The notes beneath the pieces were generated by a model. That model was not told the DNA's origin and searched no databases. It saw nothing but the letters and a program-made list of their open reading frames with translations. Both the position numbers and the translations under genes were made by a program. This document shows, piece by piece, positions 1-64,000 of a stretch of 64,000 bases of DNA (its first letter is position 1; the number at the start of each line of letters is the position of its first letter). The DNA is taken from sequence record PP777464.1, one strand, 5' to 3'.

Positions 1-1
1 A

Positions 2-145
2 CAATTACTAATCGATTCATCAACATGGCATAATAGGGAAAATTTTGCCACTGAAACTTTTCAGTACTCGGTATCTGAACCAAAGTCTCCATTTGATTTT
101 GTGTTTGTTAATAACATCCTTTTACGTTTTGGGGTAGGAGTCTAA
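2..145 (+). CDS. partial CDS (5' end outside window), EExxFQxS family
   Basis: Frame from nt 2 reads ...NFATETFQYSVSEP...GVGV* (TAA 143-145). Confidence 0.6.
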   Translation, partial: QLLIDSSTWHNRENFATETFQYSVSEPKSPFDFVFVNNILLRFGVGV

Positions 146-147
146 AT

Positions 148-501
148 ATGCTAATTTATTTGAGTGTTCTTGTTATTTCATTACTGGTATCATTAGCAGT
201 ACTGAAAGTTGTTGCTATCGGTCGTAGTAAAATTGATAGTACTGAAACCAGTTCTGTGTTGGACCTAATTATGGATCATCCAAAGATCTGTACTGGGATT
301 GTTGTGTTTGTTCTTCTTATAGGAACATTCATTGTACGTACACATTTATACAATATGTATGACTGTAGTGTTCGTTCAATTTCCCAGGGTGTTGAAACCG
401 ACTATAGCTGGTACTATGAGAAATGTCGCTTCAAAAACCAGCATGGTATTTGGGTTGATTTTGATAAACTGCGTGGCACACCATCTGGTGAAGAAGAGTA
501 A
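148..501 (+). CDS. hypothetical membrane protein (2 TM)
   Basis: RBS AGGAG; two hydrophobic segments. Confidence 0.75.
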   Translation: MLIYLSVLVISLLVSLAVLKVVAIGRSKIDSTETSSVLDLIMDHPKICTGIVVFVLLIGTFIVRTHLYNMYDCSVRSISQGVETDYSWYYEKCRFKNQHGIWVDFDKLRGTPSGEEE

Positions 502-503
502 TT

Positions 504-995
504 ATGTTTGAATTTCCTGAAGAGTCATTTAACTATATTGACCCTACTGATGACGGATACAGACACATTAATATCTATAGTAAAGCTAAAACTAAGTTAG
601 GTAGGGATCTATCTAACTTTTCGTCACATAGTTTTACCTTAGAACCATACGGTTGGTTCCCATCGGTAGAAACTTTTTATTTTTGGTTTTTAACAGGCCA
701 GAAACATGATGATCTTAGAAAAGTGTCGGGTGCTGCTGCAAAAGCAGCGGCGAACAAGTATATGCACGACCGTATTGAAATGACACCCGAATGCATTTCT
801 CGTATCCAGGATGCAATATGTGCTAAGATATTTCAAAACCCAGAACTTGCTGAACGATTGAGGAAAAGTAAGTTACCCTTCTATCATTACTATGTTTATG
901 GTGGGAAGGTGGTTGATGTATCTGATGAACATGACTGGTTTGTTAAAACATTCGAAGATATAAGAATTGTTTTGAAGGAGAACCACAATGAGTAA
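504..995 (+). CDS. NADAR-family (YbiA/T4 gp30.3-like) protein
   Basis: LSNFSSHSF...FPSVETFYF and AKIFQNPELAERL match NADAR motifs (SNF...SVEHYFQ; AKFxQNxxL). Confidence 0.7.
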   Translation: MFEFPEESFNYIDPTDDGYRHINIYSKAKTKLGRDLSNFSSHSFTLEPYGWFPSVETFYFWFLTGQKHDDLRKVSGAAAKAAANKYMHDRIEMTPECISRIQDAICAKIFQNPELAERLRKSKLPFYHYYVYGGKVVDVSDEHDWFVKTFEDIRIVLKENHNE

Positions 996-1266
996 ATGTT
1001 GGGTATGTTGTAAGCAATTCGATGAAGATTATATTATTTCTTTGGATGTATTACCACAACAATACATGATATCTTCAGGGAAATATAAACTAGATACAGT
1101 TCCAACACCTAAGTATATGGGGATTTGTCCATTGTGTAATGGGAATGGTGTATCGAATGAAGTTGTTGCATTCACAAATACACAAACTACTGATTGTGTC
1201 GCCGAATATATAAGAAAGAATCTGGCTTTTTTCACTAGGAGATTATATGAACGAGAGAATCTTTAA
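988..1266 (+). CDS. hypothetical Zn-finger protein
   Basis: CWVC...CPLC pairs. Confidence 0.65.
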   Translation: MSKCWVCCKQFDEDYIISLDVLPQQYMISSGKYKLDTVPTPKYMGICPLCNGNGVSNEVVAFTNTQTTDCVAEYIRKNLAFFTRRLYERENL

Positions 1267-1483
1267 TTCATATGATATGGAAGATTTACTAATACCATCT
1301 GATAACAGTACTGTTAAAATGCAAATGTATTGGTTAGTAAAAGATGGCAAGGTATTCCAGCACAAAGTTACAAAAGTATGGCAATGTAATAAAAACAAAT
1401 CTATAGTTGATGCACTCGCAACTGCATTTCCTGGGGTAGAGGTTGTATTTTTACCATTTGCCTACATTAAGGAAATAAAATGA
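1247..1483 (+). CDS. hypothetical protein
   Basis: ORF in operon, RBS AGGAG. Confidence 0.7.
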   Translation: MNERIFNSYDMEDLLIPSDNSTVKMQMYWLVKDGKVFQHKVTKVWQCNKNKSIVDALATAFPGVEVVFLPFAYIKEIK

Positions 1484-1623
1484 AAAAACATTGACAATAT
1501 TCGTAATACCTACTATAATGTTGTTATTGTCACTTACGGTCCCACAAGGAAATAAAATGAAAAAAACATTGACAATATTCGTAATACCTACTATAATGTT
1601 GTTATTGTCACTTACGGTCCCGC
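1469..1623 (+). repeat. tandem duplication, 77/78-bp unit containing RBS, ATG and a sigma70 promoter
   Basis: aaggaaataaaatga(6/7 A)cattgacaatattcgtaatacctactataatgttgttattgtcacttacggtccc twice. Confidence 0.95.
1491..1519 (+). promoter_or_regulatory. sigma70 promoter (copy 1; copy 2 at 1569-1597)
   Basis: TTGACA-N17-TATAAT. Confidence 0.85.
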
Positions 1624-1724
1624 AAGGGCATGTTGTGGCACTGAATGTAGTAGAAATTATTCTTCTTGTAATTCACTGCATTGTATGTTACTATTATGTA
1701 AAATCGGATGATAAAAAAATATGA
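1557..1724 (+). CDS. small membrane protein (55 aa)
   Basis: ATG of second repeat copy with RBS AAGGA; MKKTLTIFVIPTIMLLLSL...; first copy is frameshifted (MKKH*). Confidence 0.65.
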   Translation: MKKTLTIFVIPTIMLLLSLTVPQGHVVALNVVEIILLVIHCIVCYYYVKSDDKKI

Positions 1725-2143
1725 AGTACTATCGAATTCGAGTTGGTGTAAGCTCTGGTTTTAGTAATTGGGTATATTATGATTTACCTGATTGCTATAC
1801 CGTAGAAGATGTAATTGACTTATATTATGAAGAAGAGTCATGGGTATCCAGTACTGAAACACACAGTGTTGTGTGTGAAGAACTGAGTGCTGAAGATTAC
1901 AAGCACTGTACCCAAGCAATGAAGTATTACAGTAAAGATGTGAAGATGTTATCTGAAAACGTTTTTCCTGTAAAAGAATGGGCAATTTTGCTTGCAAATC
2001 CTAACAAACCTGTTAGAATAGGTTATCCAAACAATCATATGGTTTATCGAATGAATGATAAACGTGAGCTAAGTTATCAGTATGATTACAGTGCTTCTAA
2101 GTTTGGAGTTCTAAAACAATTTATGAAGGCTTATCCAGTATGA
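1721..2143 (+). CDS. hypothetical protein
   Basis: ORF, ATGA coupling. Confidence 0.7.
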   Translation: MKYYRIRVGVSSGFSNWVYYDLPDCYTVEDVIDLYYEEESWVSSTETHSVVCEELSAEDYKHCTQAMKYYSKDVKMLSENVFPVKEWAILLANPNKPVRIGYPNNHMVYRMNDKRELSYQYDYSASKFGVLKQFMKAYPV

Positions 2144-2475
2144 GCAAAGACAGCAAAGAATTTATAGTGCGTTGTAGTTGTGGCGATAATACGGAACATT
2201 GTGTTCACATTTCACAATTTGACTTGACACAAGAACATGGAGATGATAAACTTGGTCAATGTCTGGTGAGTATGCGTTTGAATCCTTTCTTAAAATGGTA
2301 CAAACGTGTATGGGTTGCATTGAAGTATATTTTCGGCGTAAACGACTTTCAATACAAAGAAGCAATGATTGATGTTGACATTCTGAAAGAAGTTGTGTTA
2401 CAATTAGAAGATACCCGCTCCGATGAGGTAAAGAAAGAAGAAAGAGATAAACGTACTGATGTGAAGGTTTTATGA
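2140..2475 (+). CDS. hypothetical protein
   Basis: ORF, ATGA coupling; CSC..EHC. Confidence 0.7.
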   Translation: MSKDSKEFIVRCSCGDNTEHCVHISQFDLTQEHGDDKLGQCLVSMRLNPFLKWYKRVWVALKYIFGVNDFQYKEAMIDVDILKEVVLQLEDTRSDEVKKEERDKRTDVKVL

Positions 2476-2666
2476 GTACTGAACTTTATGAAAAAAAGTA
2501 CTGTACAAATTGTTCAACCGAGTATACAATACAGGGTATGTTGATTTGTACAATATGCCAATCAAAACAGGCTGCCACTTTTATCGTTGATGATAGATTT
2601 GGTGATTTAAAACAGTTTAAAGCAAACCGTAATCTTCGTAACTTTAGCAATCTATATAAGGAATAA
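2472..2666 (+). CDS. small Zn-ribbon protein
   Basis: CTNC...CTIC. Confidence 0.65.
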   Translation: MSTELYEKKYCTNCSTEYTIQGMLICTICQSKQAATFIVDDRFGDLKQFKANRNLRNFSNLYKE

Positions 2667-2669
2667 CAC

Positions 2670-3098
2670 ATGAATATCGAACAAACTATCCGTAACCACT
2701 CTTTCTTCGCTGCTGAAACTGGTCGTGTAATCGAGAGCGTCAAAATTGAAGAACTGATGATTAACGTTAAATATAAAGAACTGAATGATGAGATTAGCAG
2801 CACCATTTGTGCACTACGTGCTCCATTCCGTTCTGAAGCAGCTAAGAAACCTGCCTATGTACTGGCGATTGCATTGGGTTGTGTAGTGAAATTGGTCGTT
2901 GATGAAAATCAACTAAATATCAAAGTTGCTCCAACCAACGATGAAGAAAACATCGACCTGAACTTTGAAGGTAATCTGGCTGAAGACGTATTCTTCCAAC
3001 AATCACTGGTTTATGATTTCCGTACCGTAACTCATGACCATATCAACTTTGTCAATGAGATGGTTGACATTGTAGCTGAATACGAAGCTTCCCTATAA
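2670..3098 (+). CDS. EExxFQxS family protein
   Basis: LAEDVFFQQSLVYD; RBS AAGGA; followed by terminator. Confidence 0.8.
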   Translation: MNIEQTIRNHSFFAAETGRVIESVKIEELMINVKYKELNDEISSTICALRAPFRSEAAKKPAYVLAIALGCVVKLVVDENQLNIKVAPTNDEENIDLNFEGNLAEDVFFQQSLVYDFRTVTHDHINFVNEMVDIVAEYEASL

Positions 3099-3107
3099 TT
3101 AGATTAA

Positions 3108-3135
3108 CAAAAGCCTCCGTAATGGGGGCTTTTTC
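3108..3135 (+). terminator. intrinsic terminator
   Basis: aaaagcctcc-gtaat-gggggctttt+T. Confidence 0.75.
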
Positions 3136-3154
3136 CAACATAAGGATATGAATA

Positions 3155-3706
3155 ATGATTGAACAAATTAAAATCCTAACTGAACAAATCACTGATTTTC
3201 TAGCAGATAAAGATGGATTCAGTACTGAAGTTAAAATGCATGGTGTTAGTCTCGATGTAACTGCACCAAATGGTGAAACAACCAATTATGATATGTATGA
3301 AATCCTACTTTATACATTGGCTGTTCGTAAACTTGGTAGTGATATTGAACTAAACATTAACAAAACCGAGAACGGTGACCAAGTGTTTGCAATCAACACT
3401 GGTGCACAAATGGACGTAGTAGCTGAAATCAACAAGATCAACCAATCTTTTGTGGGTTTCAAGCATGATACAATCCAATCTGTGTTCCTGGGTAAACAAA
3501 CCGGAAACAGCCACTGTCCTTATTGTGTAATGACAACCTATAAAAATGGTAACTGGATGCGTCAGGATCTAGTACTTGCAGAAATGCTTTATGCAATCAC
3601 TCACGGCCTAGAACTTGAACTTGATGATAGTGTTTACTGTTTCAAGAAAATCCGTAAACTTTCTGGTGATATACAAGCTCAATTAAAAGAATTAAATGAT
3701 AAATAA
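3155..3706 (+). CDS. hypothetical protein
   Basis: 183-aa ORF. Confidence 0.75.
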   Translation: MIEQIKILTEQITDFLADKDGFSTEVKMHGVSLDVTAPNGETTNYDMYEILLYTLAVRKLGSDIELNINKTENGDQVFAINTGAQMDVVAEINKINQSFVGFKHDTIQSVFLGKQTGNSHCPYCVMTTYKNGNWMRQDLVLAEMLYAITHGLELELDDSVYCFKKIRKLSGDIQAQLKELNDK

Positions 3707-3734
3707 TTATACCAGTAATGGTTAACATTATCAT
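3642..3734 (-). CDS. candidate antisense hydrophobic peptide (30 aa)
   Basis: RBS AGGGAGG 8 nt before ATG; MIMLTITGIIIYHLILLIELVYHQKVYGFS. Confidence 0.35.
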   Translation of the reverse strand: MIMLTITGIIIYHLILLIELVYHQKVYGFS

Positions 3735-3817
3735 GTTACTTTCCTCCCTTACATAATAATGATGCGTTATTATTTTATTGTATTATTCCCCTTTTTTGTA
3801 CAAAATCTTTTTCGTAC

Positions 3818-3845
3818 TGCCCCGACCTTCGGGGCATTTTTCTTG
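3818..3845 (+). terminator. intrinsic terminator
   Basis: GC-rich hairpin tgccc...ggggca followed by T-run. Confidence 0.7.
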
Positions 3846-3863
3846 TCTAAATTTTGAGGTTCT

Positions 3864-4259
3864 ATGAATAATACTATTGGTAGTACAATATCTAAACCAC
3901 TCTCTTATTACCTTGAAAAATTCAGAAGTACAAATGGTAAAAAATTTAATGGTATATACCAATTCTCACATAAAGAATATATCACAGTTGATTGTTATTC
4001 AAATAAACTTATGTACGTAGATGATACTGAATACTGTATGAAATTGTCATTGGATGTAGAATTAGATAAGTTAACATTTATTGAATATACATCCAAAAGA
4101 ACATCATTTCTTGGGAAATGTAATCGAAAAGTATATAAAAATATTTCAATGTACTTAAATGAAGATTACCACTTCCAACAAACAACGATTGAAGATGTTC
4201 TATTCAGTACTGAAGAATTGAAAGAACTATATTATTGGTATAAGAAATTTACAACTTGA
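3864..4259 (+). CDS. EExxFQxS family protein
   Basis: LNEDYHFQQTTIED. Confidence 0.75.
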   Translation: MNNTIGSTISKPLSYYLEKFRSTNGKKFNGIYQFSHKEYITVDCYSNKLMYVDDTEYCMKLSLDVELDKLTFIEYTSKRTSFLGKCNRKVYKNISMYLNEDYHFQQTTIEDVLFSTEELKELYYWYKKFTT

Positions 4260-4284
4260 CATTATCGTGGGTTTATCCTACACT
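4256..4284 (+). promoter_or_regulatory. sigma70 promoter
   Basis: TTGACA-N17-TACACT. Confidence 0.55.
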
Positions 4285-4314
4285 GTAAGATAATAATGCA
4301 TAGAGGATAAATTT

Positions 4315-4725: not shown

Positions 4726-4726
4726 T

Positions 4727-7065: not shown

Positions 7066-7926
7066 ATGAAACCTATCAGAGTACTGTCACTTTTTAATGG
7101 AATGAGCGTTGGATATATGGCATTGGCAGATGCAGGTATTCCAGTTGAAAAATATTACTCATCTGAAATTGACAAGTACGCAATTGCTGAATCTTCCGAG
7201 AATTTTCCTGATATTATCCAGTTAGGTGATGTGACTAAGTGGAAAGAATGGGATATTGAGTGGGATAAGATAGATTTACTCATGGGAGGATTCCCATGTC
7301 AAGCCTGGTCTGTTGCTGGTAAGCAAGGTGGCTTGAATGATATACGTGGACAGTTATTTTTGGTTATGGTTGATATTTTTGAGCACATCAAAAGTGTAAA
7401 TCCAAACTTGCAATTTCTGTTCGAGAATGTTAAAATGAAGGAAGATTTCAAAGAATACATTAATAGTATTTTAGGAATCACACCAGTACTGATAAATTCC
7501 CAGCATTATACGCCTCACTTCAGGCAGAGATACTACTGGTGCAGTACTGATAAGCTTTTTATACCACCTGCATTATCAAATGCCCCTAAACTTCAAGATA
7601 TCATTGAAGATGGTTGGTACACTGACAGAACCGCTTCGTACTGTATAGATGCTAACTATTTTAAGGGTGGTGATTGTAACCAGTACTTTAATAAATCAAG
7701 ACGACAGTTGGTGTTTCGTGACCCAACGATTAATCGTCAATATCTATTGGAGAATGGTAAAAGAAATATTGACTATAGACACTTAAGTGTAGTAGAATGT
7801 TGTAAATTACAGGGTATTCCTGTAGATTTCTTTAAAGTGTCTAGTAAGACACAAGCATACAAAATGCTTGGGAATGGATGGACTATGCCAGTTATATCAC
7901 ACTTACTAAGAGAGATATTCTTTTGA
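7066..7926 (+). CDS. DNA (cytosine-5)-methyltransferase
   Basis: Motif I LSLFNG, catalytic GGFPCQ, FENV, RQRYYW, motif X GNGW. Confidence 0.92.
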   Translation: MKPIRVLSLFNGMSVGYMALADAGIPVEKYYSSEIDKYAIAESSENFPDIIQLGDVTKWKEWDIEWDKIDLLMGGFPCQAWSVAGKQGGLNDIRGQLFLVMVDIFEHIKSVNPNLQFLFENVKMKEDFKEYINSILGITPVLINSQHYTPHFRQRYYWCSTDKLFIPPALSNAPKLQDIIEDGWYTDRTASYCIDANYFKGGDCNQYFNKSRRQLVFRDPTINRQYLLENGKRNIDYRHLSVVECCKLQGIPVDFFKVSSKTQAYKMLGNGWTMPVISHLLREIFF

Positions 7927-14595: not shown

Positions 14596-14625
14596 ATGCC
14601 CAGTCTAGTACTGGGTATTTTTTTA
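14596..14625 (+). terminator. intrinsic terminator containing AGTACT
   Basis: tgcccagt-ctagt-actgggta+TTTTTT. Confidence 0.7.
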
Positions 14626-18708: not shown

Positions 18709-19134
<426 letters not shown>

Positions 19135-19189: not shown

Positions 19190-19230
<41 letters not shown>

Positions 19231-19592: not shown

Positions 19593-20412
<820 letters not shown>

Positions 20413-28544: not shown

Positions 28545-29129
28545 ATGAGTGTTGTAGAAAAACGTTTAGTACTGAAAAATGGTAAAATGACTGTTAAGCT
28601 ATACAAAGATGAAGCTGATTCTTTTATGGCTAAAGCAATTGAGAAATCCGAACGATATAAAATTCTTGCACCTGCAAGTAAATCGCCGTATGGGTTTAAT
28701 CACGCTCACAGTCATTTTGTTGGTATGGTATGTGAACATGCTTCATTTGTACTTTTTAATGAAATTGAAAACTATTCAGGTATTGCACTTAACATCGATC
28801 CAGCGTTCCAAAGTGATGGACGTGATGGGGAATGTGATATCAAAGTAAACAACTTAAGAATTGAAGTGAAAGGTATCAAGTACAAATCGTGGACCGACTT
28901 TGGACCATGTGTTAGTACTCGACAGTTAAAAAATATACAGAAAAAAGCTGACGTTATTCTGTGGGTATTGTATAATGAGAAAAAGCAAGAATTCACATTT
29001 GAGGGATTCAACTATGTAAAAGACATTAGTTCGATTCCAGTTGTGCTAACAGGTGTACCAGGGCGACCAATGATTGAAAATCACCCAGTACTGAGTATTA
29101 TTAAACCACTTCAGGAGTTACCATTATGA
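28545..29129 (+). CDS. PD-(D/E)XK nuclease-like protein
   Basis: GMVCEH...DGECD...IEVK. Confidence 0.65.
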   Translation: MSVVEKRLVLKNGKMTVKLYKDEADSFMAKAIEKSERYKILAPASKSPYGFNHAHSHFVGMVCEHASFVLFNEIENYSGIALNIDPAFQSDGRDGECDIKVNNLRIEVKGIKYKSWTDFGPCVSTRQLKNIQKKADVILWVLYNEKKQEFTFEGFNYVKDISSIPVVLTGVPGRPMIENHPVLSIIKPLQELPL

Positions 29130-36565: not shown

Positions 36566-36593
36566 TTGACATAAGATATCAGTACTGTATAAT
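36566..36593 (+). promoter_or_regulatory. sigma70 promoter, AGTACTG class
   Basis: TTGACA-N9-AGTACTG-TATAAT. Confidence 0.85.
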
Positions 36594-40311: not shown

Positions 40312-40544
40312 TATTGAGTTTTGTAGTTGCATTATTGTTTATGTTCTACCCTACACTAGTAGCAGTAGCCACTAAACGAAAGCTGGTGGATATCACTACT
40401 GTATTCTTGCTAAACGTGGCACTCGTTCTAGTGTCTATTATCATTCCCGTGAGCTTTACGGTTATTGATATGGCATCTGTATTACTATTCGTCTTCAGTT
40501 ATCTTATGCTTATTGAAGAAAAACCTGTTGACAAACGTTTGTAG
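40302..40544 (+). CDS. T4 Imm-like superinfection immunity membrane protein
   Basis: FYPTLVAVATKRK...VFLLNV. Confidence 0.6.
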   Translation: MYLVLSFVVALLFMFYPTLVAVATKRKLVDITTVFLLNVALVLVSIIIPVSFTVIDMASVLLFVFSYLMLIEEKPVDKRL

Positions 40545-40555
40545 TACTGTATAAT
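40528..40555 (+). promoter_or_regulatory. sigma70 promoter, AGTACTG class
   Basis: TTGACA-N9-AGTACTG-TATAAT. Confidence 0.85.
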
Positions 40556-43779: not shown

Positions 43780-44004
43780 ATGAAATATCTAGTACTAGTA
43801 CTGCTATTCTTGAGTACTGTTGTATGTGCTAAACCAAAGTATCATGTAGTGTGTATCAACGAGATGGAAGGATATACTGAAACATATAAGAACCATATTG
43901 TTGAAGTTGCAGCCCAAGGTTCCTATGGGACCATCATCTTCCTTAAGAACAATGTGATTGTTCAGTACAAAAAAGATTCAAATTGTAAAGTGACTAAAAA
44001 TTGA
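43780..44004 (+). CDS. small exported two-Cys protein
   Basis: Signal peptide VCA. Confidence 0.7.
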   Translation: MKYLVLVLLFLSTVVCAKPKYHVVCINEMEGYTETYKNHIVEVAAQGSYGTIIFLKNNVIVQYKKDSNCKVTKN

Positions 44005-51393: not shown

Positions 51394-51450
51394 TTGACAA
51401 ACTCATTCAGTACTGTATAATGTTTATCAAGGGGATGAACTTCTCATCCC
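51394..51450 (+). promoter_or_regulatory. sigma70 promoter (AGTACTG class) with leader hairpin
   Basis: TTGACA-N9-AGTACTG-TATAAT; GGGGATGA-acttc-TCATCCCC. Confidence 0.85.
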
Positions 51451-57485: not shown

Positions 57486-57520
57486 AAAAAATCCAGTACT
57501 ATAATAGTACTGGATTAATT
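57486..57520. terminator. bidirectional terminator made of two AGTACT arms
   Basis: ATCCAGTACT-ataat-AGTACTGGAT. Confidence 0.8.
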
Positions 57521-58645
57521 TTAATTATCTAAGCCACCAATTACACTGAACTGTGTGGTAACGTCTGAACTATTATCTATGTAAGTTCTTCTACCAACAT
57601 AATATAGTTGTCCTTTTGCTTGAATAAAAGTTACGGTCCCTGTATTGAATGTTATAATATCATTGTATGTAATGTCAGGTGGTAGTGCTGCTGATAACGC
57701 AGTAACTTTACTTAATGCAGCACTAGTACTACCATTTATACCAGCAGCAATACTACCAGTACCATAGAACTTATTATCTTTACCAATGAATACGTTGGCT
57801 GATGCTTGTGTAGCTGATGTTATTGCCTTACCAATTTGGAATGCGGTTCCTATGGTGTATGGTGTGCTCCTGGCTGCGTCTATGCTTTGTGTATATCCAT
57901 CCCCTAGCTGACCATTAACTTTGTCACCACATGAGTATAGAGTACCATTGAGGCTGTATATGATCCCACGGTTAGAGAAGCTAACAGCTTCTGCATTAGT
58001 CCATACTGGTGCGGTGTATGAGTTTACACGACTAGCGGTAGTTCCTAGACCTAGTATACCATATGTGTTATCACCACATCCAAACCATTGTCCAGAACTG
58101 TTTTGATAGAACACTGAACGTTCTGTTGATTCCATGCGTACAGCATCCACAGCACCACTTTTAACGAACGAAGTTGATGAGGATGTAGTACCAGTACCCA
58201 ATGCACCATAAGTGTTTGTACCAATCGCATAGATTGATCCTAGTGGTGTCATAACACGTATGCAGTTATATCCCAATTGAACTTTACATTCAAATAGGTT
58301 GTCCCATATTTCAGGAACAGCAGAAAATAAATTTGTAATTTCGAACCATGATGTTGTCGAATCAGTTAATCCAATACTGCTTTTGTTTCCTAAAATGAAA
58401 ACAGTTTTGTCCTTCTTAATTATCCATGATGATAGGAAACCTATCTCACAGCTATGAACATTTGATTCTATTTGGGTAATATAATACTTAACTGTGTTAT
58501 CACCCATGAATGCCGCAGCACCGGATGCAAAAAGGTTTCCAGTTTGTTTATTTAAAATGTAGTTATTGTTTCCATATACACTAACATCATAAGAACTTTC
58601 TTGTTTTTCGTTCCCATAATCAAATAACAATACGAAAGGTAACAT
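57521..58645 (-). CDS. RCC1/BLIP-II-like beta-propeller protein (MLPF family)
   Basis: Repeats G.N.YG.LG.G; N-term MLPFVLLFDYGN. Confidence 0.8.
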   Translation of the reverse strand: MLPFVLLFDYGNEKQESSYDVSVYGNNNYILNKQTGNLFASGAAAFMGDNTVKYYITQIESNVHSCEIGFLSSWIIKKDKTVFILGNKSSIGLTDSTTSWFEITNLFSAVPEIWDNLFECKVQLGYNCIRVMTPLGSIYAIGTNTYGALGTGTTSSSTSFVKSGAVDAVRMESTERSVFYQNSSGQWFGCGDNTYGILGLGTTASRVNSYTAPVWTNAEAVSFSNRGIIYSLNGTLYSCGDKVNGQLGDGYTQSIDAARSTPYTIGTAFQIGKAITSATQASANVFIGKDNKFYGTGSIAAGINGSTSAALSKVTALSAALPPDITYNDIITFNTGTVTFIQAKGQLYYVGRRTYIDNSSDVTTQFSVIGGLDN

Positions 58646-58661
58646 GATAAAATCTCCTTGT

Positions 58662-58676: not shown

Positions 58677-58722
58677 ATCATTTTATAATGTACAATTTTA
58701 CAGCGATTTAATTGAGGTACTC

Positions 58723-59373: not shown

Positions 59374-59375
59374 AA

Positions 59376-59403
59376 GAAAAGCCAGTACATAGTACTGGCA
59401 TTA
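59376..59403. terminator. terminator between convergent genes
   Basis: aaaagaaaa-GCCAGTAC-ata-GTACTGGC. Confidence 0.75.
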
Positions 59404-59405
59404 TA

Positions 59406-60542
59406 TTAAACTGGTGGAGAATTATATGGCTCAAATTTATAAGTTGTCGTAGCAGTACCAGCAATGGCGTTGTTAGCTAGTATGTACATAGTCCTGTAGT
59501 CGATTACCACTACAGTAATACTACCACCAAAAGCATAGTCTGTTATGTTATTAGTGTTGAATGGTAAATTAGATGAACTGGTCCATGTATTAGCTGTTGT
59601 GCTATTTGTACCATTGGAATAACCTACACTAGATGCACCAGTTGTCCATAAGTTTCCATCATTGAACAAGGAGACATGGTTAGTTGTATATGATTTATTA
59701 GGTATAGAACTATCAATTGGTGTATTCCAAACTTTAGTAACCCATGTTGTAACTGCTGTATTATTAGTAACGCCATTACCTAATGAACCATTTATTGGTA
59801 TACCTCTTATATAAGAAGTGTTAGTACTAGGGTCAACATATCCAAATGTATATGTATCAAATGCAAATTGAAAACAATCAGAACTCGGTAATGTGTACAG
59901 TAATGTATATGAAGACGTGTTTATTGATGAATTTGTACCGTTCACGCCTTGGTATAAAATACCACTAGCCAATATTTGATTATTATTTTTTGTTATAGTG
60001 TTCATTGATGGATATGTTTTCACATCACGCACATCATTAGTCACATATGTTTGTGTTGATAATGCAACGTTACTACCATTACCTATAACCCCTGTATTTG
60101 CACCACTCCCATAAAGTGAACCATCATTCAAAAGAACCATTGTAACATTACCATTTCCCGTAATTGTTTTAATATTACTAACATCCACCGCAGCAAATAC
60201 AGTTGATGTTAAATCAGTGAAACGTGTATAATGTGATGTTGTGCCATTGATTGGTGTCGCAAAACCAGAATACAAAATTCTATTTTCTTTGGTAATAAGG
60301 AATGTGCCAGTAACACCATTTGAATGGATATCAACAATATTATCGCCCATTAATACCCAATCACTTACGAATGTTGTTGTACCAGTACCCAACCCATATG
60401 TCGTATTGTATCCACGTCCATACACTCTACCATCACTGAGTAATGTTACCACACATTGACCACCACCACCAAGGATAACTTTTTGGATAGTACTCTTTAC
60501 TTTTATATTCCCGTACTTAACCATTCTTGCAAAAGGTAACAT
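59406..60542 (-). CDS. RCC1-like beta-propeller protein (MLPF family)
   Basis: MLPFARMVKYGN; GRVYGRGYNTTYGLGTG. Confidence 0.8.
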   Translation of the reverse strand: MLPFARMVKYGNIKVKSTIQKVILGGGGQCVVTLLSDGRVYGRGYNTTYGLGTGTTTFVSDWVLMGDNIVDIHSNGVTGTFLITKENRILYSGFATPINGTTSHYTRFTDLTSTVFAAVDVSNIKTITGNGNVTMVLLNDGSLYGSGANTGVIGNGSNVALSTQTYVTNDVRDVKTYPSMNTITKNNNQILASGILYQGVNGTNSSINTSSYTLLYTLPSSDCFQFAFDTYTFGYVDPSTNTSYIRGIPINGSLGNGVTNNTAVTTWVTKVWNTPIDSSIPNKSYTTNHVSLFNDGNLWTTGASSVGYSNGTNSTTANTWTSSSNLPFNTNNITDYAFGGSITVVVIDYRTMYILANNAIAGTATTTYKFEPYNSPPV

Positions 60543-60556
60543 TCTTTTTCTCCTTG

Positions 60557-61705
60557 TTATATTGATGGCATATCCAACACATATGAGTTGCTAGTGATTG
60601 ATGAATATGTAGAATTTAAACCTGTACTATAAACATAATCACCTGCCCATAAGAATGTTCTATCCAATGTTGTATGTATTTCAATATCATCATATGATGA
60701 TAATGATATTTGTGCCAGTGTATATGTAGTAGCATCAATGTTTGAACCAATACCCAAAGTACCATTGTATTGTGATTGGGAGTTTTGACCAGTTGCATAT
60801 ATACCAGATTTGGTTATTAAATGCTGATTGTACATTGACGTACCTTTAAACAATTTAATTAAATTAGAGTTGGGTGTTGTTATTTGTGCAGGAGCAAGTA
60901 TTGTTGTTGTAGTGCCACCATCACCCAATTGACCATATCGTTGGTAACCACCAGCGTATACCTGTTTAACTCCAGCAGTAGTTTCTATAATAAAGAATGA
61001 ACCATAGCCAGTAGTATTAAAGTCTATTATTTTATTTGTACTCAAACCAACATTATATCTAGTAAATGTTGTTGCATTTGCTGAACCACCAGCATTCCCA
61101 CCGACCATTTGACCACTATAATAAAATGCACCAGTACTGTCAGTATAAGCCATACAGTTTTCACTACCATATATTTTCACTGGTGTACTGGGGAAACTAG
61201 AGGTTATATTCACACATGTATTATATTTTGCAGTAGTTCCAGTAATTTCACCATTGTTGTTTTGACCAATGACCCAAACTGTGTCATCTGAACGTATAGC
61301 CATTGAGCTATAAAACGAGGATACAAATTGTTTAATAAAGGAACCAGGGAGAGAAGTAAGCATACTATTGATTTGTGCACTCACATTGGTCCATGTATTC
61401 ACAACTGAATTGACACCTGCTGCTGCACCGGAACCAGAACTCCACCATGATTCATCATTCTTTTTAATCAATGTACCGTTAGCAGAGCAATAAACATCAG
61501 CAACTGAACTATTAACTAATATCCATTCCCTCGCTGCTGTTGTATTACCAGTACCTAGCTGTCCTGCTGCATTACTACCCTTAGCATATAAATCGCCATT
61601 CTGCGTTAAAAGCATAGTATGTTGGTATCCAGTTGACAATTTCTTTATTTTTGGTAATGCTGGTGCTTCATTTCCATAATCAAACATTCTAACAAAAGGT
61701 AACAT
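60557..61705 (-). CDS. RCC1-like beta-propeller protein (MLPF family)
   Basis: MLPFVRMFDYGN; GDLYAKGSNAAGQLGTG. Confidence 0.85.
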   Translation of the reverse strand: MLPFVRMFDYGNEAPALPKIKKLSTGYQHTMLLTQNGDLYAKGSNAAGQLGTGNTTAAREWILVNSSVADVYCSANGTLIKKNDESWWSSGSGAAAGVNSVVNTWTNVSAQINSMLTSLPGSFIKQFVSSFYSSMAIRSDDTVWVIGQNNNGEITGTTAKYNTCVNITSSFPSTPVKIYGSENCMAYTDSTGAFYYSGQMVGGNAGGSANATTFTRYNVGLSTNKIIDFNTTGYGSFFIIETTAGVKQVYAGGYQRYGQLGDGGTTTTILAPAQITTPNSNLIKLFKGTSMYNQHLITKSGIYATGQNSQSQYNGTLGIGSNIDATTYTLAQISLSSYDDIEIHTTLDRTFLWAGDYVYSTGLNSTYSSITSNSYVLDMPSI

Positions 61706-61722
61706 AATTCCCTCCTTTATTC

Positions 61723-61737
61723 ATTATACTATATTTA
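61723..61737 (-). promoter_or_regulatory. putative late promoter TAAATA-N3-TATAAT
   Basis: Followed by RBS AAGGAGG. Confidence 0.6.
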
Positions 61738-61744
61738 ATCAAAA

Positions 61745-61770
61745 AGAAAAGCCAGCACTCTGTACTGGCA
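61745..61770 (-). terminator. intrinsic terminator (minus strand)
   Basis: GCCAGTAC/GTGCTGGC hairpin + TTTTCTTTT on minus strand. Confidence 0.7.
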
Positions 61771-61782
61771 TAGTATTAAGGT

Positions 61783-62913
61783 TTAAATATTTTTATAATT
61801 AATTTCTACATAGTTACGTTGTGTTCCAGTATATCCTGGAACATTACCTATATTTCCATTACCTGCACCAAACAGACGTTCTCCGACTGCAAAATATGTC
61901 CCATAGAAACAACCATCAAACACAGGAACATCATTATAATTTGATATGTAATTATCCATAGAATCCATTCTAGTGTATACTGTCAGAGCTACATTCGTAC
62001 CCATACCATATGCACCATACGGGTTAGTACCAGCAACATAATACCCAGTGGGTGTACATATTACTGGTGAATTTGCCCCTGATCTCGTGTGGATAAATCT
62101 AAATGTACCTTCAGGTACTGGTGCTTCTTTACTGAATAATGTTGTAGCTACTACTGGGTAATCAATACCATAACTATTACCACTCAACCACGTTTTACCA
62201 TCACTATCTTTGAATAATGAACAGGATTGTGTGCATCCGAACAGATTCAAATTGGTTACATTTGGAAATTTACTAATTTGTGTATATACCAGAACTGTGG
62301 TTGCGGCAGCACTACCAAGTTGTCCACGACCATTATCACCCGCACTGTACATGTACCCATCGGTCTTTAATATTATACTAGCGTTTCCTAAAATATCAAA
62401 ATCAACAACATCCGTTTGTGTTAATGTAGCTATAGGATAACGAAAATTCACTGCCTCACCAGTACCAAATTGACAATTGGTGTTTGCCCCACATCCATAT
62501 AAGTTGCCGTTTTGCATTAATATAAACAAACCTGTTGTCATTTTAATTTTCTTAATATTAAGAATATCTATATCTTGGAATATGTGTGTTACATTTACAA
62601 ATGTGGTTGAGTTAACAGCACTTGAACCATAATAAGAACCGTTCCCGCTGCCAAAGAATTCATCGCCTTTTCTGTACATTGCACATAGACTACCACCCCA
62701 TACATCATCAACCCCAGTGTCAATTTGAATAACAGAAGTAACACTAGTTGTTGTACCAGTGCCAAGTTCACCACCTGAATTGTATCCAAAACCATACAAA
62801 TCCCCACTTTCTGTTAGCACCAAAACACTGTTATTGGTTGTGCATGAAATCTTTTTGATATTATTAGATGGTCTTTTATTTCCGTACTTAACCATTCTTG
62901 CAAAAGGTAACAT
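61783..62913 (-). CDS. RCC1-like beta-propeller protein (MLPF family)
   Basis: MLPFARMVKYGN; GDLYGFGYNSGGELGTG. Confidence 0.85.
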   Translation of the reverse strand: MLPFARMVKYGNKRPSNNIKKISCTTNNSVLVLTESGDLYGFGYNSGGELGTGTTTSVTSVIQIDTGVDDVWGGSLCAMYRKGDEFFGSGNGSYYGSSAVNSTTFVNVTHIFQDIDILNIKKIKMTTGLFILMQNGNLYGCGANTNCQFGTGEAVNFRYPIATLTQTDVVDFDILGNASIILKTDGYMYSAGDNGRGQLGSAAATTVLVYTQISKFPNVTNLNLFGCTQSCSLFKDSDGKTWLSGNSYGIDYPVVATTLFSKEAPVPEGTFRFIHTRSGANSPVICTPTGYYVAGTNPYGAYGMGTNVALTVYTRMDSMDNYISNYNDVPVFDGCFYGTYFAVGERLFGAGNGNIGNVPGYTGTQRNYVEINYKNI

Positions 62914-62930
62914 ATTTCCCTCCTTTATTC

Positions 62931-62945
62931 ATTATACTATATTTA
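62931..62945 (-). promoter_or_regulatory. putative late promoter TAAATA-N3-TATAAT
   Basis: About 33 bp near-identical to 61705 upstream region. Confidence 0.6.
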
Positions 62946-62950
62946 ATACA

Positions 62951-62980
62951 AAAAGAAATGCCAGTATCAAGTACTGGCAT
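62951..62980 (-). terminator. intrinsic terminator (minus strand)
   Basis: GCCAGTA-tcaag-TACTGGC with A-run on plus side. Confidence 0.7.
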
Positions 62981-62992
62981 AGTTTTATAGTA

Positions 62993-64000
62993 TCATTTCG
63001 GCATTGTAATTGCAGACCATGAGTTCGTGGTAATAGGACCTGGCACATACAAAAAAGAACCACAAGCATAAATTTGATTATTACCATCAAATACTATACT
63101 AAAATGTGCACATGTGTATAATGCTGATTTTTCTGGGTTGTAATTATCTAAAGTTAGTGTATTGGTGAATCTACTCAAACCACCACCAGAACCATTTCTA
63201 CCAAATTCACCAGTACTATATATCTTTCCTTCGGTTGTTGCGTACATATTAACATATGAAGTTGCACTTGATTTTGATATTTTATGTATCTTACTATCAA
63301 TAGTAGTGGAGTTAAATGCAAATGGATATACTTGTGTGTTCGTTGTAATACCGTTACCAAGTTGACCAACATACTGCCAACCTGCGTTGTATATATTGCT
63401 GGCTGAATAAGCAAGAGTACCAGTACTGTTACCACCAAACAGTTTAACACTGGTTAACCTGCTTACTAGTGTAGTATACTGTCCTGGACTTACGCCAAGT
63501 GAACCATACCCACTACTCCCACAACCGAGAAGTTCACCATTTGATGTTAATATTAATGTGTTATTCTGTGTACCCAATATATCAAGGACTGTATTAGCTC
63601 CGGTATTAATAACTGAAACAAAAGTACTCTGAGCCGTGGAATACCCAGCACCGAGTGAATAGTTACCATTCATGCCTCTACCATAAACAATCGAACCACT
63701 AGCATCAACGTAGTGCATTGTATCTACACCAATTGATATCATTTTAATATTAGATATATGTGGAAATGAAGAAGTAACATTCAAACCACCCAACTGAATC
63801 GTAGTATTTCCTGTGCCTAATTGTGTGGTAACTCCATGCATTATGAATTCTTCACCCTTGAGATAAAGAATATTGTACGCCCCAGCCCATGCATCAGTAA
63901 CACCTTCTGAAATTAATATCCAAGTATTTCTTGTTGCTGTATTTTCAACGTTTAACTGAAAATAAGTATTAACCCCACAACCATAAAGTGAGCCATCGCC
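62993..64000 (-). CDS. RCC1-like beta-propeller protein, 5' end outside window
   Basis: Frame stays open to nt 64000 (GDGSLYGCGVNTYFQL...); RCC1 repeats. Confidence 0.8.
   Translation of the reverse strand, partial: GDGSLYGCGVNTYFQLNVENTATRNTWILISEGVTDAWAGAYNILYLKGEEFIMHGVTTQLGTGNTTIQLGGLNVTSSFPHISNIKMISIGVDTMHYVDASGSIVYGRGMNGNYSLGAGYSTAQSTFVSVINTGANTVLDILGTQNNTLILTSNGELLGCGSSGYGSLGVSPGQYTTLVSRLTSVKLFGGNSTGTLAYSASNIYNAGWQYVGQLGNGITTNTQVYPFAFNSTTIDSKIHKISKSSATSYVNMYATTEGKIYSTGEFGRNGSGGGLSRFTNTLTLDNYNPEKSALYTCAHFSIVFDGNNQIYACGSFLYVPGPITTNSWSAITMPK

Follow-up and report, generated by a model that had tools for sequence, protein, structure and literature searches.

AGTACT, a densely iterated palindrome of RaK2-like jumbo phages that resembles the cyanobacterial HIP1 repeat

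The closest described system to the repeat reported here is Highly Iterated Palindrome 1 of cyanobacteria (HIP1, GCGATCGC), together with the "alternate HIPs", for which cognate orphan methyltransferases (CGATCG, GATC) are known (PMC4390886, PMC5861425). The hexamer AGTACT of the RaK2/PBECO4-like jumbo phage fEgEco12, an Escherichia phage, seems to be a viral analogue of HIP1. Like HIP1, it is a short perfect palindrome that is the most abundant word of its genome (its octamer is 58-fold enriched, HIP1 15- to 300-fold), exceeds, in every frame of genes as well as outside them, the level that codon usage can account for, shows turnover between related genomes but better conservation than the sequence around it, and is spaced more evenly than random. 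Unlike HIP1, it belongs to the genome of a lytic virus, not to the chromosome of a cell, and is AT-rich, with a 6-bp core and softer outer positions; its link to a methyltransferase is putative, and contradicted for the C5 enzyme; and it has fixed places in promoters and a one-stranded block, neither of which is described for HIP1 (PMC4390886, PMC5861425). Chi, KOPS and DNA uptake sequences are likewise short, dense genome-wide through selection on DNA and tolerated in genes, but these signals lack symmetry, are skewed to one strand and are read by a known host factor, whereas AGTACT is symmetric; only a block of the variant AGTACA (29-37.6 kb of the genome) behaves like an oriented signal. 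Repressor operators and the Dam-sensitive promoters of P1 and Mu are examples of operator or methylation sites in phage promoters. AGTACT resembles these in abutting or overlapping the -35 or -10 element at fixed registers conserved across genera, but differs in that more than 90% of its copies lie within genes, away from any promoter. With respect to restriction-site avoidance, fEgEco12 is an extreme case, purged of nearly every other short GC-rich palindrome, with 25 palindromic hexamers and GCGC wholly absent; AGTACT is the opposite, 8-fold up, and the unrelated coliphage muut avoids it completely.

We analysed 64,000 nucleotides of the fEgEco12 genome (record PP777464.1), hereafter the window. 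AGTACT, whose optimal form is C-AGTACT-G, is found in 174 copies across 1..64000 (no strand assigned), in all reading frames and intergenic DNA, against 20.3 ± 4.6 expected from dinucleotide-preserving shuffles (maximum 31). The over-representation described in an earlier note on this DNA is real and stronger than was thought there; its hand counts of about 15 sites in nt 1-6000 and about 21 in nt 36000-42000 compare with exact counts of 16 and 21. AGTACT ranks first among hexamers both in the window and in the 353.7 kb of unique genome, where 977 sites amount to an 8.2-fold enrichment. The top octamer genome-wide is CAGTACTG (n = 221, 58-fold; 44 in the window versus 0.65 expected), and TCAGTACTGA is found 55 times (141-fold). 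The mean density is about one site per 368 bp in the window and about one per 360 bp as a general figure. Sites in the window start at 63, 198, 238, 1307, 1725, 1850, 2475, 2497, 3221, 3571, 4206, 4399, 4762, 5024, 5058, 5654, 6268, 6779, 6913, 7080, 7485, 7543, 7682, 8154, 8733, 9320, 9341, 9803, 10259, 10336, 10500, 12068, 12133, 12970, 13350, 13646, 14377, 14607, 15821, 15947, 16403, 16482, 16635, 17063, 17515, 18009, 18651, 18671, 18725, 19051, 19091, 19197, 19217, 19956, 19976, 20106, 20201, 20701, 21540, 21776, 22588, 22964, 23531, 24348, 24576, 24808, 25167, 25197, 25314, 26080, 26189, 26482, 26843, 26966, 27722, 27885, 28568, 28914, 29087, 29260, 29274, 29395, 29648, 30523, 31556, 31742, 31906, 32196, 32386, 32877, 33238, 34101, 34258, 34511, 35454, 35775, 36173, 36235, 36581, 36807, 37012, 37181, 37841, 37943, 37980, 38035, 38056, 38644, 38797, 39991, 40143, 40235, 40543, 40749, 40761, 41492, 41963, 42465, 42700, 43442, 43791, 43797, 43813, 45388, 46129, 46401, 46551, 46936, 47272, 48372, 48601, 49297, 49597, 50129, 50195, 50932, 51409, 51799, 51827, 51885, 52186, 52408, 52637, 52786, 52950, 53008, 53765, 54080, 54291, 54473, 54533, 54580, 54992, 55008, 55131, 55772, 56603, 56840, 57495, 57506, 57725, 59020, 59091, 59110, 59175, 59252, 59391, 59823, 60489, 61133, 62970, 63212, 63422 and 63623.

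Base composition, abundant GTAC, codon usage, the dipeptides encoded or repeated DNA could produce such an excess as a by-product without function. GTAC alone is 2.3-fold enriched, GTA, ACT and AGT are preferred codons, and some promoter cassettes are repeated. However, synonymous-codon shuffling within genes, which keeps protein and codon usage, yields 42.7 ± 5.7 copies against 154 observed (z = 19), so that the excess survives the amino-acid and codon-usage correction that the earlier note had proposed as a refuting test. It also persists under the Markov correction suggested there, at 4.6-fold in a second-order model and with z = 5.3 in the window in the maximal-order model. Synonymously accessible positions are occupied in 154 of 316 cases (49% versus 11% expected), equally in the three frames (53/44/47%); TGTACA, of the same composition, is only 1.8-fold enriched genome-wide; and no such word exists in PA5oct and muut, used as control phages, where the top hexamers are codon-type words with an O/E of about 4. 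We consider the by-product reading refuted by these shuffle, Markov, frame, TGTACA and control-phage comparisons and give it practically no chance. In + strand genes, 64 sites read AGT-ACT, 31 xAG-TAC-Txx and 50 xxA-GTA-CTx, and the density is essentially equal in intergenic DNA (3.2/kb) and in + strand genes (2.8/kb), in line with the noted occurrence in all frames and in non-coding DNA. Of the dipeptides, Ser-Thr and Val-Leu are over-represented, unlike Thr-Ser and Leu-Val. The excess does not depend on coding, and the density is held by natural selection for the DNA sequence itself rather than for the proteins it encodes.

At 84% genome identity, 72% of AGTACT sites are conserved, compared with 44% for all hexamers (phase-matched expectation, 54 of 122), and at 96.5% identity the figures are 93% and 85%. 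Sites also turn over at constant density, 81 being shared and 30 and 22 lineage-specific. Their spacing is more even than that of every other frequent hexamer (CV 0.92 versus 1.00 ± 0.03 for random, P = 0.008), and the largest gap is 1,976 bp versus 2,798 ± 489 bp (P = 0.009). Since sites are preserved above other words and yet gained and lost, it is density and coverage that are maintained rather than individual positions.

The enrichment is common to Asterius-, Eneladus-, Mimas- and Alcyoneusvirus on five host genera and is stable over five related phage genera, ranging from 6.7- to 9.3-fold in TH47, EC22.5-2, GAP32, RaK2, CBB, XbC2 and BF. The trait is absent from PA5oct, a distant relative with a Pseudomonas host (0.2-fold), and muut has 0 sites versus 13.8 expected. 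In 100 kb of E. coli K-12, AGTACT is about 4-fold depleted (0.26-fold), and its density in the phage is about 45 times that in E. coli. The comparison with relatives and host called for earlier has therefore returned enrichment in enterobacterial RaK2-like jumbo phages and depletion in E. coli. A positive force on the DNA, as proposed in the earlier note, is supported by the codon and amino-acid controls, by conservation with turnover and by the stability over five genera, in a genome that has also purged 25 other palindromic hexamers and every GCGC.

A host protein might be what binds AGTACT, for example the nucleoid-occlusion factor SlmA, with the phage blocking cell division or borrowing a nucleoid protein. 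The 12-bp SlmA site, GTGAGTACTCAC, has an AGTACT core (PMC3020112), and the enriched genera infect Enterobacterales, whereas the Pseudomonas relative PA5oct is without the trait. However, the first two positions of the SlmA site must be G and T and the third a purine, where the phage has C (G in only 9%); GTNAGTACTNAC is matched by just 2 of the 977 sites, and flanks like those of SlmA sites occur less often than in the background. Moreover, the most enriched phage, XbC2 (9.3-fold), infects Xanthomonas, so that the trait follows phage ancestry, not host. SlmA as the reader is largely refuted by these observations, and we regard host-protein binding as very unlikely.

AGTACT is the sole palindromic hexamer more than 2.3-fold above expectation in fEgEco12. 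It is preceded by C at -1 in 43-44% and followed by G at +6 in 47-55% of cases (background 16-19%), which upholds and sharpens the YAGTACTR extension noticed earlier. Both flanks contribute independently, and weak mirror-image A/T preferences reach ±9 bp. This graded, symmetric motif has the shape typical of a dimer footprint. Flank strength differs by phage (CAGTACTG is 58- to 80-fold enriched in Asteriusvirus, Alcyoneusvirus and XbC2 and 13- to 16-fold in CBB and BF); across genera the 6-bp core is constant while the outer C/G flank varies.

A subset of sites holds two fixed positions in early sigma70 promoters. Among 87 consensus promoters, 39 carry AGTACT, 17 at -27 and 21 at -7/-8 from the start of the -10 hexamer, although these observations are in part dependent on one another, many of the cassettes being paralogous copies. 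Sites in RaK2, BF, GAP32 and XbC2 take up the same positions again (6 of 7 sites). On the + strand of the window, the promoter TTGACT-N9-CAGTACTG-TATAAT (18710..18737) has the site abutting the -10 hexamer (class -7). A two-site promoter (19197..19230, +; classes -28 and -8) has one AGTACT fused to the -35, its last T being the first T of TTGACT, plus CAGTACTG-A-TATAAT, in which the TG of CAGTACTG forms a canonical extended -10 (TGnTATAAT); a second copy of this architecture, AGTACTTGACT...CAGTACTGATAAAAT, lies at 19956..19989 (+). TTGACA-N9-CAGTACTG-TATAAT is read at 36566..36593 and 51394..51421, and TTGACA-N9-TAGTACTG-TATAAT at 40528..40555, all on the + strand. Sites are also found in hairpins (no strand assigned unless given). 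Between convergent gene blocks, both arms of a terminator-type structure (57492..57522; TCCAGTACTAT / ATAGTACTGGA, then a T-rich run) carry AGTACT, and the predicted fold (dG about -16 kcal/mol) pairs both sites fully. Further predicted hairpins are GCCAGTAC-AT-AGTACTGGC with two half-sites (59381..59399), GCCAGTAT-CA-AGTACTGGC (62960..62978) and an intrinsic-terminator-like GCCCAGT-CT-AGTACTGGGT followed by T7 (14598..14625, +). The earlier observation of sites in promoters and in terminator arms is borne out by these elements.

Our main reading, which we hold tentatively and put somewhat short of an even chance, is that a phage-encoded sequence reader uses AGTACT both as a self-mark and as a promoter operator; every step past selection on the DNA is our inference. 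AGTACT would be the docking sequence of a putative clade-specific phage protein, which would recognise duplex DNA with two-fold symmetry, as a dimer. Bound at about 1,000 places, the protein might mark or organise phage DNA as "self", which would require no hypermodified bases. Where the site adjoins the -35 or -10 of an early promoter, the same protein could act as an operator-type switch, in the simplest form shutting off early genes once it accumulates. Among the ideas of the earlier note, we favour the self-mark and the nucleoid or DNA-binding-protein site. Several points stand against this reading. Promoters, where the site adjoins the -35 or -10, account for only about 5-8% of sites, and many of the cassettes are paralogous. 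A constant 6-bp core with a variable flank is seen more typically with enzymes that demand an exact 6-bp site than with transcription-factor operators. E. coli depletion and muut avoidance suggest that host restriction of the ScaI type is a real pressure; if so, the phage would pay a high price for leaving 977 sites unprotected, and protection by nothing more than a binding protein would be unusual. Furthermore, a one-stranded AGTACA block is unlike what a symmetric dimer predicts.

This conserved block of 8.6 kb (29.0-37.6 kb of the fEgEco12 genome, outside the window) has strictly the one-stranded variant, with 46 AGTACA, 0 TGTACT and 0 AGTACT; AGTAC is found 51 times and GTACT once, about 8 being expected of each. 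The homologous EC22.5-2 block (81% identity) has 49 AGTACA and 0 TGTACT. AGTACA is distributed equally over the frames (18/19/17) in unrelated peptide contexts, exceeds synonymous shuffles (54 versus 25 ± 4, z = 7.2), is conserved in 29 of 42 cases versus a 43% background, and has a left flank (T at -3 and -2, C at -1) matching the main motif. These results suggest that one strand, or half of the site, can suffice for reading. The unit might then be the 5-mer (C)AGTAC on one strand, read by a nicking endonuclease, T4-type primase, translocase or helicase-nuclease. The palindrome would be the most economical way to put the signal on both strands of coding DNA, with symmetric flanks automatic if each strand bears its own oriented element, and a one-direction process in the block would leave the signal on one strand only. 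T4 primers are pentaribonucleotides, one strand of T5 virion DNA is nicked at specific sites, and T4 late transcription loads its clamp at nicks in the non-transcribed strand, all of which favour such a reader. On the other hand, 63% of AGTAC occurrences genome-wide lie within the full palindrome (977 of 1,541), far above the need of independent single-strand elements; the known primases, to our knowledge, require a trinucleotide only; and the phage has no recognisable nickase. The block also covers only about 2.5% of the genome, and since all its genes are on the + strand, a transcription-linked or RNA-level cause is inseparable from a replication-linked one. We consider a strand reader rather unlikely.

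A phage methyltransferase might instead methylate AGTACT, as for HIP1. The methyl mark could be used to tell self from host or to time promoters (methylated versus newly replicated DNA), or methylation-coupled biased repair could keep creating AGTACT, as in Elhai's model (PMC4390886). The palindrome reproduces every statistical hallmark of HIP1 (PMC5861425), and work on a giant virus has discussed viral methyltransferases with AGTACT as their assigned site (PMC7253447). A genome purged of 25 palindromic hexamers and GCGC that tolerates 977 ScaI-type sites plausibly protects them, and the depletion in E. coli and absence from muut are in keeping with this. The phage encodes two recognisable methyltransferases. 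The small Dam-family N6-adenine enzyme g162 has homologs in every AGTACT-rich genus, Eneladusvirus included, but the founding members of PF05869 are GATC-specific Dam enzymes. The C5-cytosine enzyme g455 (7066..7926, +; 286 aa, PF00145) has orthologs in Asterius-, Mimas- and Alcyoneusvirus, and in several clade members carries an intein at its catalytic Cys, which marks it as a conserved and functional gene. However, it matches the catalytic domain of the CpG-specific DNMT3A/B enzymes over its full length; RaK2, which carries an ortholog, has methylated CpG according to bisulfite evidence reported with data not shown (PMC3622015), and AGTACT contains no CpG; and Serratia phage BF is fully enriched, yet neither its syntenic locus nor the top database hits include a g455 ortholog. 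Because of the DNMT3 likeness, the CpG methylation in RaK2 and the case of BF, g455 is probably CpG-directed and not the AGTACT enzyme. As to repair, one-off neighbour words of AGTACT are not depleted (O/E 0.86-1.39, second-order Markov model), so there is no VSP-repair signature; between-lineage substitutions at its C show no C-to-T excess, and no Vsr-like or restriction nuclease adjoins g455 or g162 in Pfam, PADLOC and PHROG annotation. The methyltransferase/nuclease pair of the earlier note is not supported either, given the probable CpG specificity and the case of BF, and g508 (28545..29129, +), annotated as "putative endonuclease", belongs to a PHROG of unknown function and matched no Pfam, PADLOC or functionally named PHROG family, leaving its nuclease assignment without support. 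Methylation of AGTACT appears distinctly unlikely to us, and neither methyltransferase is probably the reader proposed in our main reading.

The density of AGTACT peaks at 6.6/kb in the 21-kb terminal repeats, which carry early genes at both genome ends. This peak, together with the high and even coverage, would fit a Chi-like signal taming host RecBCD on a linear phage genome, as had been suggested. However, about one third of the terminal-repeat sites (45 of 138) abut promoter elements, and Chi is asymmetric and orientation-dependent, E. coli RecBCD recognising GCTGGTGG, whereas AGTACT is palindromic. The + strand carries 24 copies of genuine E. coli Chi versus 1.3 expected (18-fold), with 10 copies in the terminal repeat, so that the RecBCD problem already has its classical answer, and a Chi-like role for AGTACT is highly improbable. 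The lower density noted for the minus-strand RCC1 genes is seen within the window (9 sites in 6.7 kb, 1.3/kb) but not over the whole RCC1 block (58 sites in 19 kb, 3.05/kb), and is thus not a genuine property of these genes. A local cluster at 43791..43818 (no strand assigned) consists of two abutting sites (AGTACTAGTACT) and a third 16 bp beyond.

The window is 100% identical to nt 272,878-336,877 of Escherichia phage fEgEco12 (PP777464.1), a jumbo myovirus of 374,733 bp in the RaK2-like PBECO4/121Q group (Asteriusvirus), with direct terminal repeats of 20,993 bp (PMC13070987). The remaining genome was read piecewise for a genome-wide judgement of the motif. The palindrome AGTACT (ScaI site) occurs 174 times in the window, compared with 20.3 ± 4.6 (maximum 31) in dinucleotide-preserving shuffles. 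The over-representation claimed in the earlier note is thus borne out, and its hand counts are right: two stretches of 6 kb contain 16 and 21 sites. AGTACT is the top-ranking hexamer both in the window and in the whole unique genome (354 kb), where 977 sites are found against 119 expected (2.76 per kb). Enrichment rises outward, from 2.3-fold for GTAC and 8.2-fold for AGTACT to 58-fold for the octamer CAGTACTG (221 versus 3.8 expected; the genome's commonest octamer) and 141-fold for TCAGTACTGA. C is found at position -1 in 44% of the sites and G at +6 in 47%, with roughly independent contributions, and weak, mirror-image A/T preferences extend to ±9 bp. TGTACA, a control word of identical composition, is enriched just 1.8-fold. 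A minus-strand array of RCC1-repeat ('chromosome condensation regulator') genes lies at window positions 57,521-64,000 and extends beyond the window (330-349 kb of the genome). The low AGTACT density noted in these genes holds within the window (1.3 per kb), but the whole array carries 3.05 per kb, indicating local fluctuation only.

As had been claimed, AGTACT is found in all frames and in non-coding DNA. Plus-strand genes carry it as Ser-Thr (64), x-Tyr-x (31) and Val-Leu type (50) codons, and its intergenic density (3.2 per kb) is at the same level as its coding density (2.8 per kb). When synonymous codons were shuffled within genes, which preserves all proteins and the codon usage of every gene, 42.7 ± 5.7 sites were obtained compared with 154 observed (z = 19), and shuffling the order of codons gave 24.6. 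Among the 316 positions at which AGTACT is synonymously accessible, 154 (49%) are occupied versus 11% expected, with near-equal occupancy by frame (53%, 44% and 47%). The excess also stays in Markov-corrected counts, at 4.6-fold above the second-order expectation, so that both controls proposed earlier leave it in place. That AGTACT is an artefact with no function is a minor possibility: dinucleotide shuffles, Markov models of order 0-4, synonymous and codon-order shuffles and the occupancy analysis, all of which the excess survives, exclude an origin in composition or codon usage. The dipeptides Ser-Thr (135 versus 87 expected) and Val-Leu (154 versus 116) are inflated, and Thr-Ser and Leu-Val are not; the pressure for AGTACT has even bent protein sequences.

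Lytic phages are the textbook example of palindrome avoidance. Of the 64 palindromic hexamers, 25 are missing altogether from the 354 kb of fEgEco12 (10-37 expected each), the tetramer GCGC is at zero versus about 350 expected, and GATC and CTAG are halved. AGTACT is the single glaring exception to this avoidance. A similar purge can be seen in 40-50 kb samples of the phages GAP32, CBB, XbC2, BF and muut, from which 26-31 hexamers are absent. In 100 kb of E. coli K-12, AGTACT occurs 6 times versus 23 expected (0.06 per kb), which gives a phage:host density ratio of about 45. The unrelated 146 kb coliphage muut has no AGTACT in 41 kb (MN850573.1 27,734-68,708), versus 13.8 expected. E. coli isoschizomers of ScaI exist, and the avoidance in muut together with the under-representation in E. 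coli suggests that phages of this host range do face pressure from ScaI-type restriction.

AGTACT is enriched in TH47 (7.5-fold), EC22.5-2 (7.6-fold), Cronobacter phage GAP32 (7.2-fold), Klebsiella phage RaK2 (7.5-fold), Pectobacterium phage CBB (6.7-fold), Serratia phage BF (7.6-fold) and Xanthomonas phage XbC2 (9.3-fold), and is usually the commonest hexamer in these relatives. All share a constant 6 bp core, with CBB and BF showing a weaker outer C/G flank. In a distant relative, Pseudomonas phage PA5oct, AGTACT is depleted (3 versus 16.6). No alternative iterated palindrome was found in PA5oct or muut, where the top words are about 4-fold enriched and codon-type. The comparison with relatives and host that had been suggested thus sets a 6.7- to 9.3-fold enrichment against depletion in E. 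coli K-12, and the pattern indicates that the trait tracks the phage lineage (Asterius-, Eneladus-, Mimas- and Alcyoneusvirus) and not the host.

Conservation was compared with EC22.5-2 (PBECO4-type, 83.8% identity over 44 kb) and TH47 (96.5% identity). In EC22.5-2, 88 of 122 AGTACT sites are intact (72%), versus 44% of all hexamers and a frame-matched expectation of 54 sites (z about 6); in TH47, 93% are intact versus 85%. Per-base identity is 0.87-0.93 within the site versus about 0.85 in the flanks. Across the three genomes 81 sites are common, 30 are found only in the fEgEco12/TH47 lineage and 22 only in EC22.5-2, at unchanged density; this turnover implies that density and coverage are maintained, not individual positions. 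With the terminal repeat and one special block set aside, AGTACT is spaced more evenly than random (CV 0.92 versus 1.00 ± 0.03, P = 0.008), with a largest gap of 1,976 bp (versus 2,798 ± 489, P = 0.009), and the other frequent hexamers are all over-dispersed (CV 1.0-1.6). No true period, helical (about 10.5 bp) or other, was found in the spacing, whose sole peak, at 20-22 bp, arises from two-site promoters. It is settled that the AGTACT word itself is under strong selection of long standing, or under an equivalent directional force; the codon controls and the conservation above background support the DNA-level selection inferred in the earlier note. A mutational drive of the VSP-repair type, as proposed for cyanobacterial HIP1 (Highly Iterated Palindrome 1), was rejected. 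The nine distinct one-off neighbor words (the 18 single-base variants of AGTACT with reverse complements pooled) are undepleted (O/E 0.86-1.39), so such a drive has left no trace here, and no C-to-T excess is seen between lineages at the C of the site.

HIP1 is the closest known phenomenon, and AGTACT reproduces all of its statistical hallmarks (PMC4390886, PMC5861425). AGTACT is a short perfect palindrome among the commonest words and, in its octamer form CAGTACTG, clears the roughly 15-fold mark of hyper-abundance; it shows an excess beyond codon usage in every frame and in non-coding DNA, better conservation of its sites between relatives than of other words or of the flanks, and a distribution more even than random. 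AGTACT is thus a feature of the highly iterated palindrome type, now in a virus, and a real and striking one. We say that it works like HIP and claim no membership of the class, because the defining link to a cognate methyltransferase (MTase) is at most a candidate one here. No prior description of the motif was found in the literature on fEgEco12, Sharanji, CBB, RaK2 and the Eneladusviruses, nor by full-text search.

A methylation-linked mechanism of the HIP type ranks third among the explanations considered, and we regard it as improbable. Two MTases are present in fEgEco12, g455 and g162. The latter (L004:11064-11588 in our sequence pieces) belongs to a family that co-occurs with AGTACT, which speaks for such a mechanism. 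It is a small phage N6-adenine DNA methyltransferase of the Dam family (PF05869), with homologs in all AGTACT-enriched genera, Eneladusvirus included. The founding members of PF05869 are GATC enzymes. The annotation of g162 as a 'type I restriction-modification system methyltransferase subunit' is misleading, and the wording on methylases in the Eneladusvirus genus paper, 'adenine or cytosine', is loose.

The other enzyme, g455 (window 7066-7926), is a C5-cytosine MTase (PF00145) with orthologs in Asterius-, Mimas- and Alcyoneusvirus. Its best full-length matches among solved structures are the CpG-specific catalytic domains of DNMT3A/B, and AGTACT contains no CpG. RaK2 DNA was reported to carry methylated CpG by bisulfite sequencing (data not shown by its authors) and to be cut only by enzymes tolerating Dam, Dcm and CpG methylation (PMC3622015). 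No g455 ortholog was found in BF at the syntenic locus or among the best 60 database matches (all at least 50% identical), and no MTase was found in BF at that locus or by tblastn in the 50 kb read. The locus (L021:46000-50000; NC_041917.1 about 281-285 kb) holds a peptidyl-tRNA hydrolase, tRNA-Leu and a membrane protein. From its sequence, BF looks like a natural loss of the C5 MTase with the AGTACT enrichment intact. The candidacy of g455 as the AGTACT enzyme is weakened by its DNMT3-like sequence, by the RaK2 report and by its absence from the 50 kb of BF. The homolog in muut, where the site is avoided, is 50% identical, with 49 extra residues inserted in its target-recognition region, and for this reason we dropped the argument from muut against g455. 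In TH47 the ortholog (MT446416.1 175,441-177,327, minus strand; L011:25441-27327) contains an in-frame LAGLIDADG intein of 342 residues whose insertion point immediately precedes the P-C-Q motif's catalytic Cys (GGFP|CFTEGT...VVHN|CQSWS). The break point (residue 78) in JNE01, ph0011, UE-S1 and A4 is as in TH47, implying an intein there as well; since the intein is in-frame, a g455-type enzyme is probably still made.

ClaI and NruI are CpG-sensitive. Both were reported to cut fEgEco12 DNA as predicted, in published digests with ten enzymes, all other than ScaI (PMC13070987). This conflicts with the RaK2 report (PMC3622015); the specificity or activity of the C5 enzymes may not be the same in the two phages, or else one of the reports is incomplete.

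The earlier note had proposed that g455 and a nuclease encoded at 28545 (g508) form a self-marking pair. This proposal is not supported, as g455 is DNMT3-like and lacks a detected ortholog in BF, and g508 was rejected as a nuclease for want of a nuclease-family match in Pfam, PHROGs and PADLOC. The genes beside the MTase (g454, g456, g457 and g458) likewise match no nuclease family in these databases, so that the adjoining endonuclease gene of a Type II restriction-modification system (ScaI/Eco255I type) was not found. In the same searches g456 matches no family at all and was discarded as an MTase partner; only four close homologs of it were found, and its AF2 model is unusable (pLDDT 56).

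One part of the genome carries a derivative of the motif on a single strand. Over 8.6 kb outside the window (genome 29,020-37,640; L003:29020-37640) AGTACT is absent, and AGTACA is the top hexamer on the coding strand (46 versus 3 expected), with its reverse complement TGTACT at 0. AGTAC occurs 51 times versus 1 for GTACT, and of 88 GTAC words 76 have A as the next base. Over the wider desert (20.9-37.7 kb), AGTACA is distributed equally across the three frames in unrelated peptide contexts, and its number in genes is 2-fold over the synonymous-shuffle expectation (z = 7.2). The AGTACA sites carry the left flank of the main AGTACT motif. In EC22.5-2 (L022:14100-22950, 81% identity) the block, its orientation bias and 29 of the 42 AGTACA sites are conserved. 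A recent horizontal origin of the AGTACT-free block was rejected, as block and AGTACA signal are conserved across the genus. The block shows that the readable unit can be a half-site or a single strand. It thereby speaks for a strand-reading enzyme acting on (C)AGTAC, which we rank second and consider unlikely.

AGTACT was also noted earlier in promoters and terminator arms, and both are confirmed. A genome-wide search for TTGMMN-N15-18-(T/C)ATAAT gave 87 promoter matches, 39 of which contain AGTACT. The site starts 27 nt before the -10 hexamer in 17 cases, fused to the -35 element (AAAAGTACTTGCA), and 7-8 nt before it in 21 cases (CAGTACTG-(N)-TATAAT), although not all of these cases are independent because many cassettes are paralogous. 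In the -8 register, the TG that ends the site creates a canonical extended -10. Six clear promoter-embedded examples lie in the window, and six of seven promoter-embedded sites in RaK2, BF, GAP32 and XbC2 fall in the same registers. A fixed register relative to -35/-10 that is conserved in relatives, as expected of an operator, is thus seen for the promoter-linked share of the sites, about 5-8% of the total. At several intergenic sites the half-site supplies the arms of a terminator-type hairpin, such as TCCAGTACTAT/ATAGTACTGGA at window 57,492-57,514. The motif goes unmentioned in published analyses of CBB and GAP32 promoters (PMC5259590). In the terminal repeat, AGTACT reaches 6.6 per kb, and 45 of 138 sites adjoin promoter elements. 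This repeat (genome 1-20,993 = 353,741-374,733) contains about 56 very short early genes, and almost every gene has a near-consensus sigma70 promoter to itself. These promoters belong to a small number of repeated cassette families, several of which have a pair of AGTACT sites 20-22 bp apart. The arrangement is reminiscent of the first-step-transfer region in phage T5.

The explanation we rank first, and tentatively favor, is a two-fold-symmetric DNA-binding protein of the phage. A putative clade-specific, phage-encoded protein of this symmetry would bind AGTACT, which would act as a dense 'self' mark or organizer of phage DNA and, at early promoters, as an operator for the putative reader. 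Confidence in a purely symmetric dimer stays restrained, mainly because of the AGTACA block. It is possible, if somewhat doubtful, that the observations join into one system, in which AGTACT every ~360 bp would be a sequence-based 'self' code without base hypermodification, a putative phage protein would distinguish phage from host DNA and time the early promoters, and AGTACA would steer a direction-dependent process in one block. If true, no highly iterated palindrome would have been described in a virus before, and the 30-year-old HIP1 question would gain a tractable model: a lytic phage with a short life cycle and 1,000 sites that grows on E. coli K-12.

It is worth noting that a lineage that has purged 25 hexamer palindromes and every GCGC has AGTACT as its commonest word, at a density held across five phage genera and at least five host genera at visible protein cost. 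That the word is upheld amid such avoidance and at such cost points to an important, unrecognized jumbo-phage biology that reads DNA sequence genome-wide. The clade is a tractable system for studying the purpose of highly iterated palindromes, a question open for HIP1 since the 1990s. AGTACT also offers a simple signature for spotting the clade in metagenomes and is a predicted regulatory element of its early promoters. Caution is advisable when these therapeutic-candidate phages are engineered or recoded, since hundreds of selected sites would be lost to synonymous recoding.

Recognition of AGTACT by host proteins was considered in two forms, both minor. Binding by a host factor was examined through SlmA, whose binding site (SBS; GTGAGTACTCAC) has an AGTACT core flanked by G-T (positions 1-2) and a purine (position 3) (PMC3020112). 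The SBS pattern GTNAGTACTNAC fits only 2 of the 977 phage sites, G is at -1 in 9%, and SBS-like flanks are rarer than the background expectation; the flanks rule out SlmA sites, which speaks against a host factor. The second form, a Chi-like role with RecBCD, had been raised in the earlier note as a recombination signal and is unlikely. A Chi-type signal is asymmetric, oriented and strand-skewed, whereas AGTACT is its own reverse complement and only the AGTACA block is oriented. The Chi recognized by host RecBCD is GCTGGTGG in E. coli, a different word that is itself enriched 18-fold on the plus strand of fEgEco12 (24 versus 1.3 expected; 12 on the opposite strand). Plus-strand Chi sites in the window lie at about 34,412, 40,381 and 50,913 (genome 307,289, 313,258 and 323,790). 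Ten of the 24 are in the 21 kb terminal repeat, correctly oriented for RecBCD entry from the right genome end.
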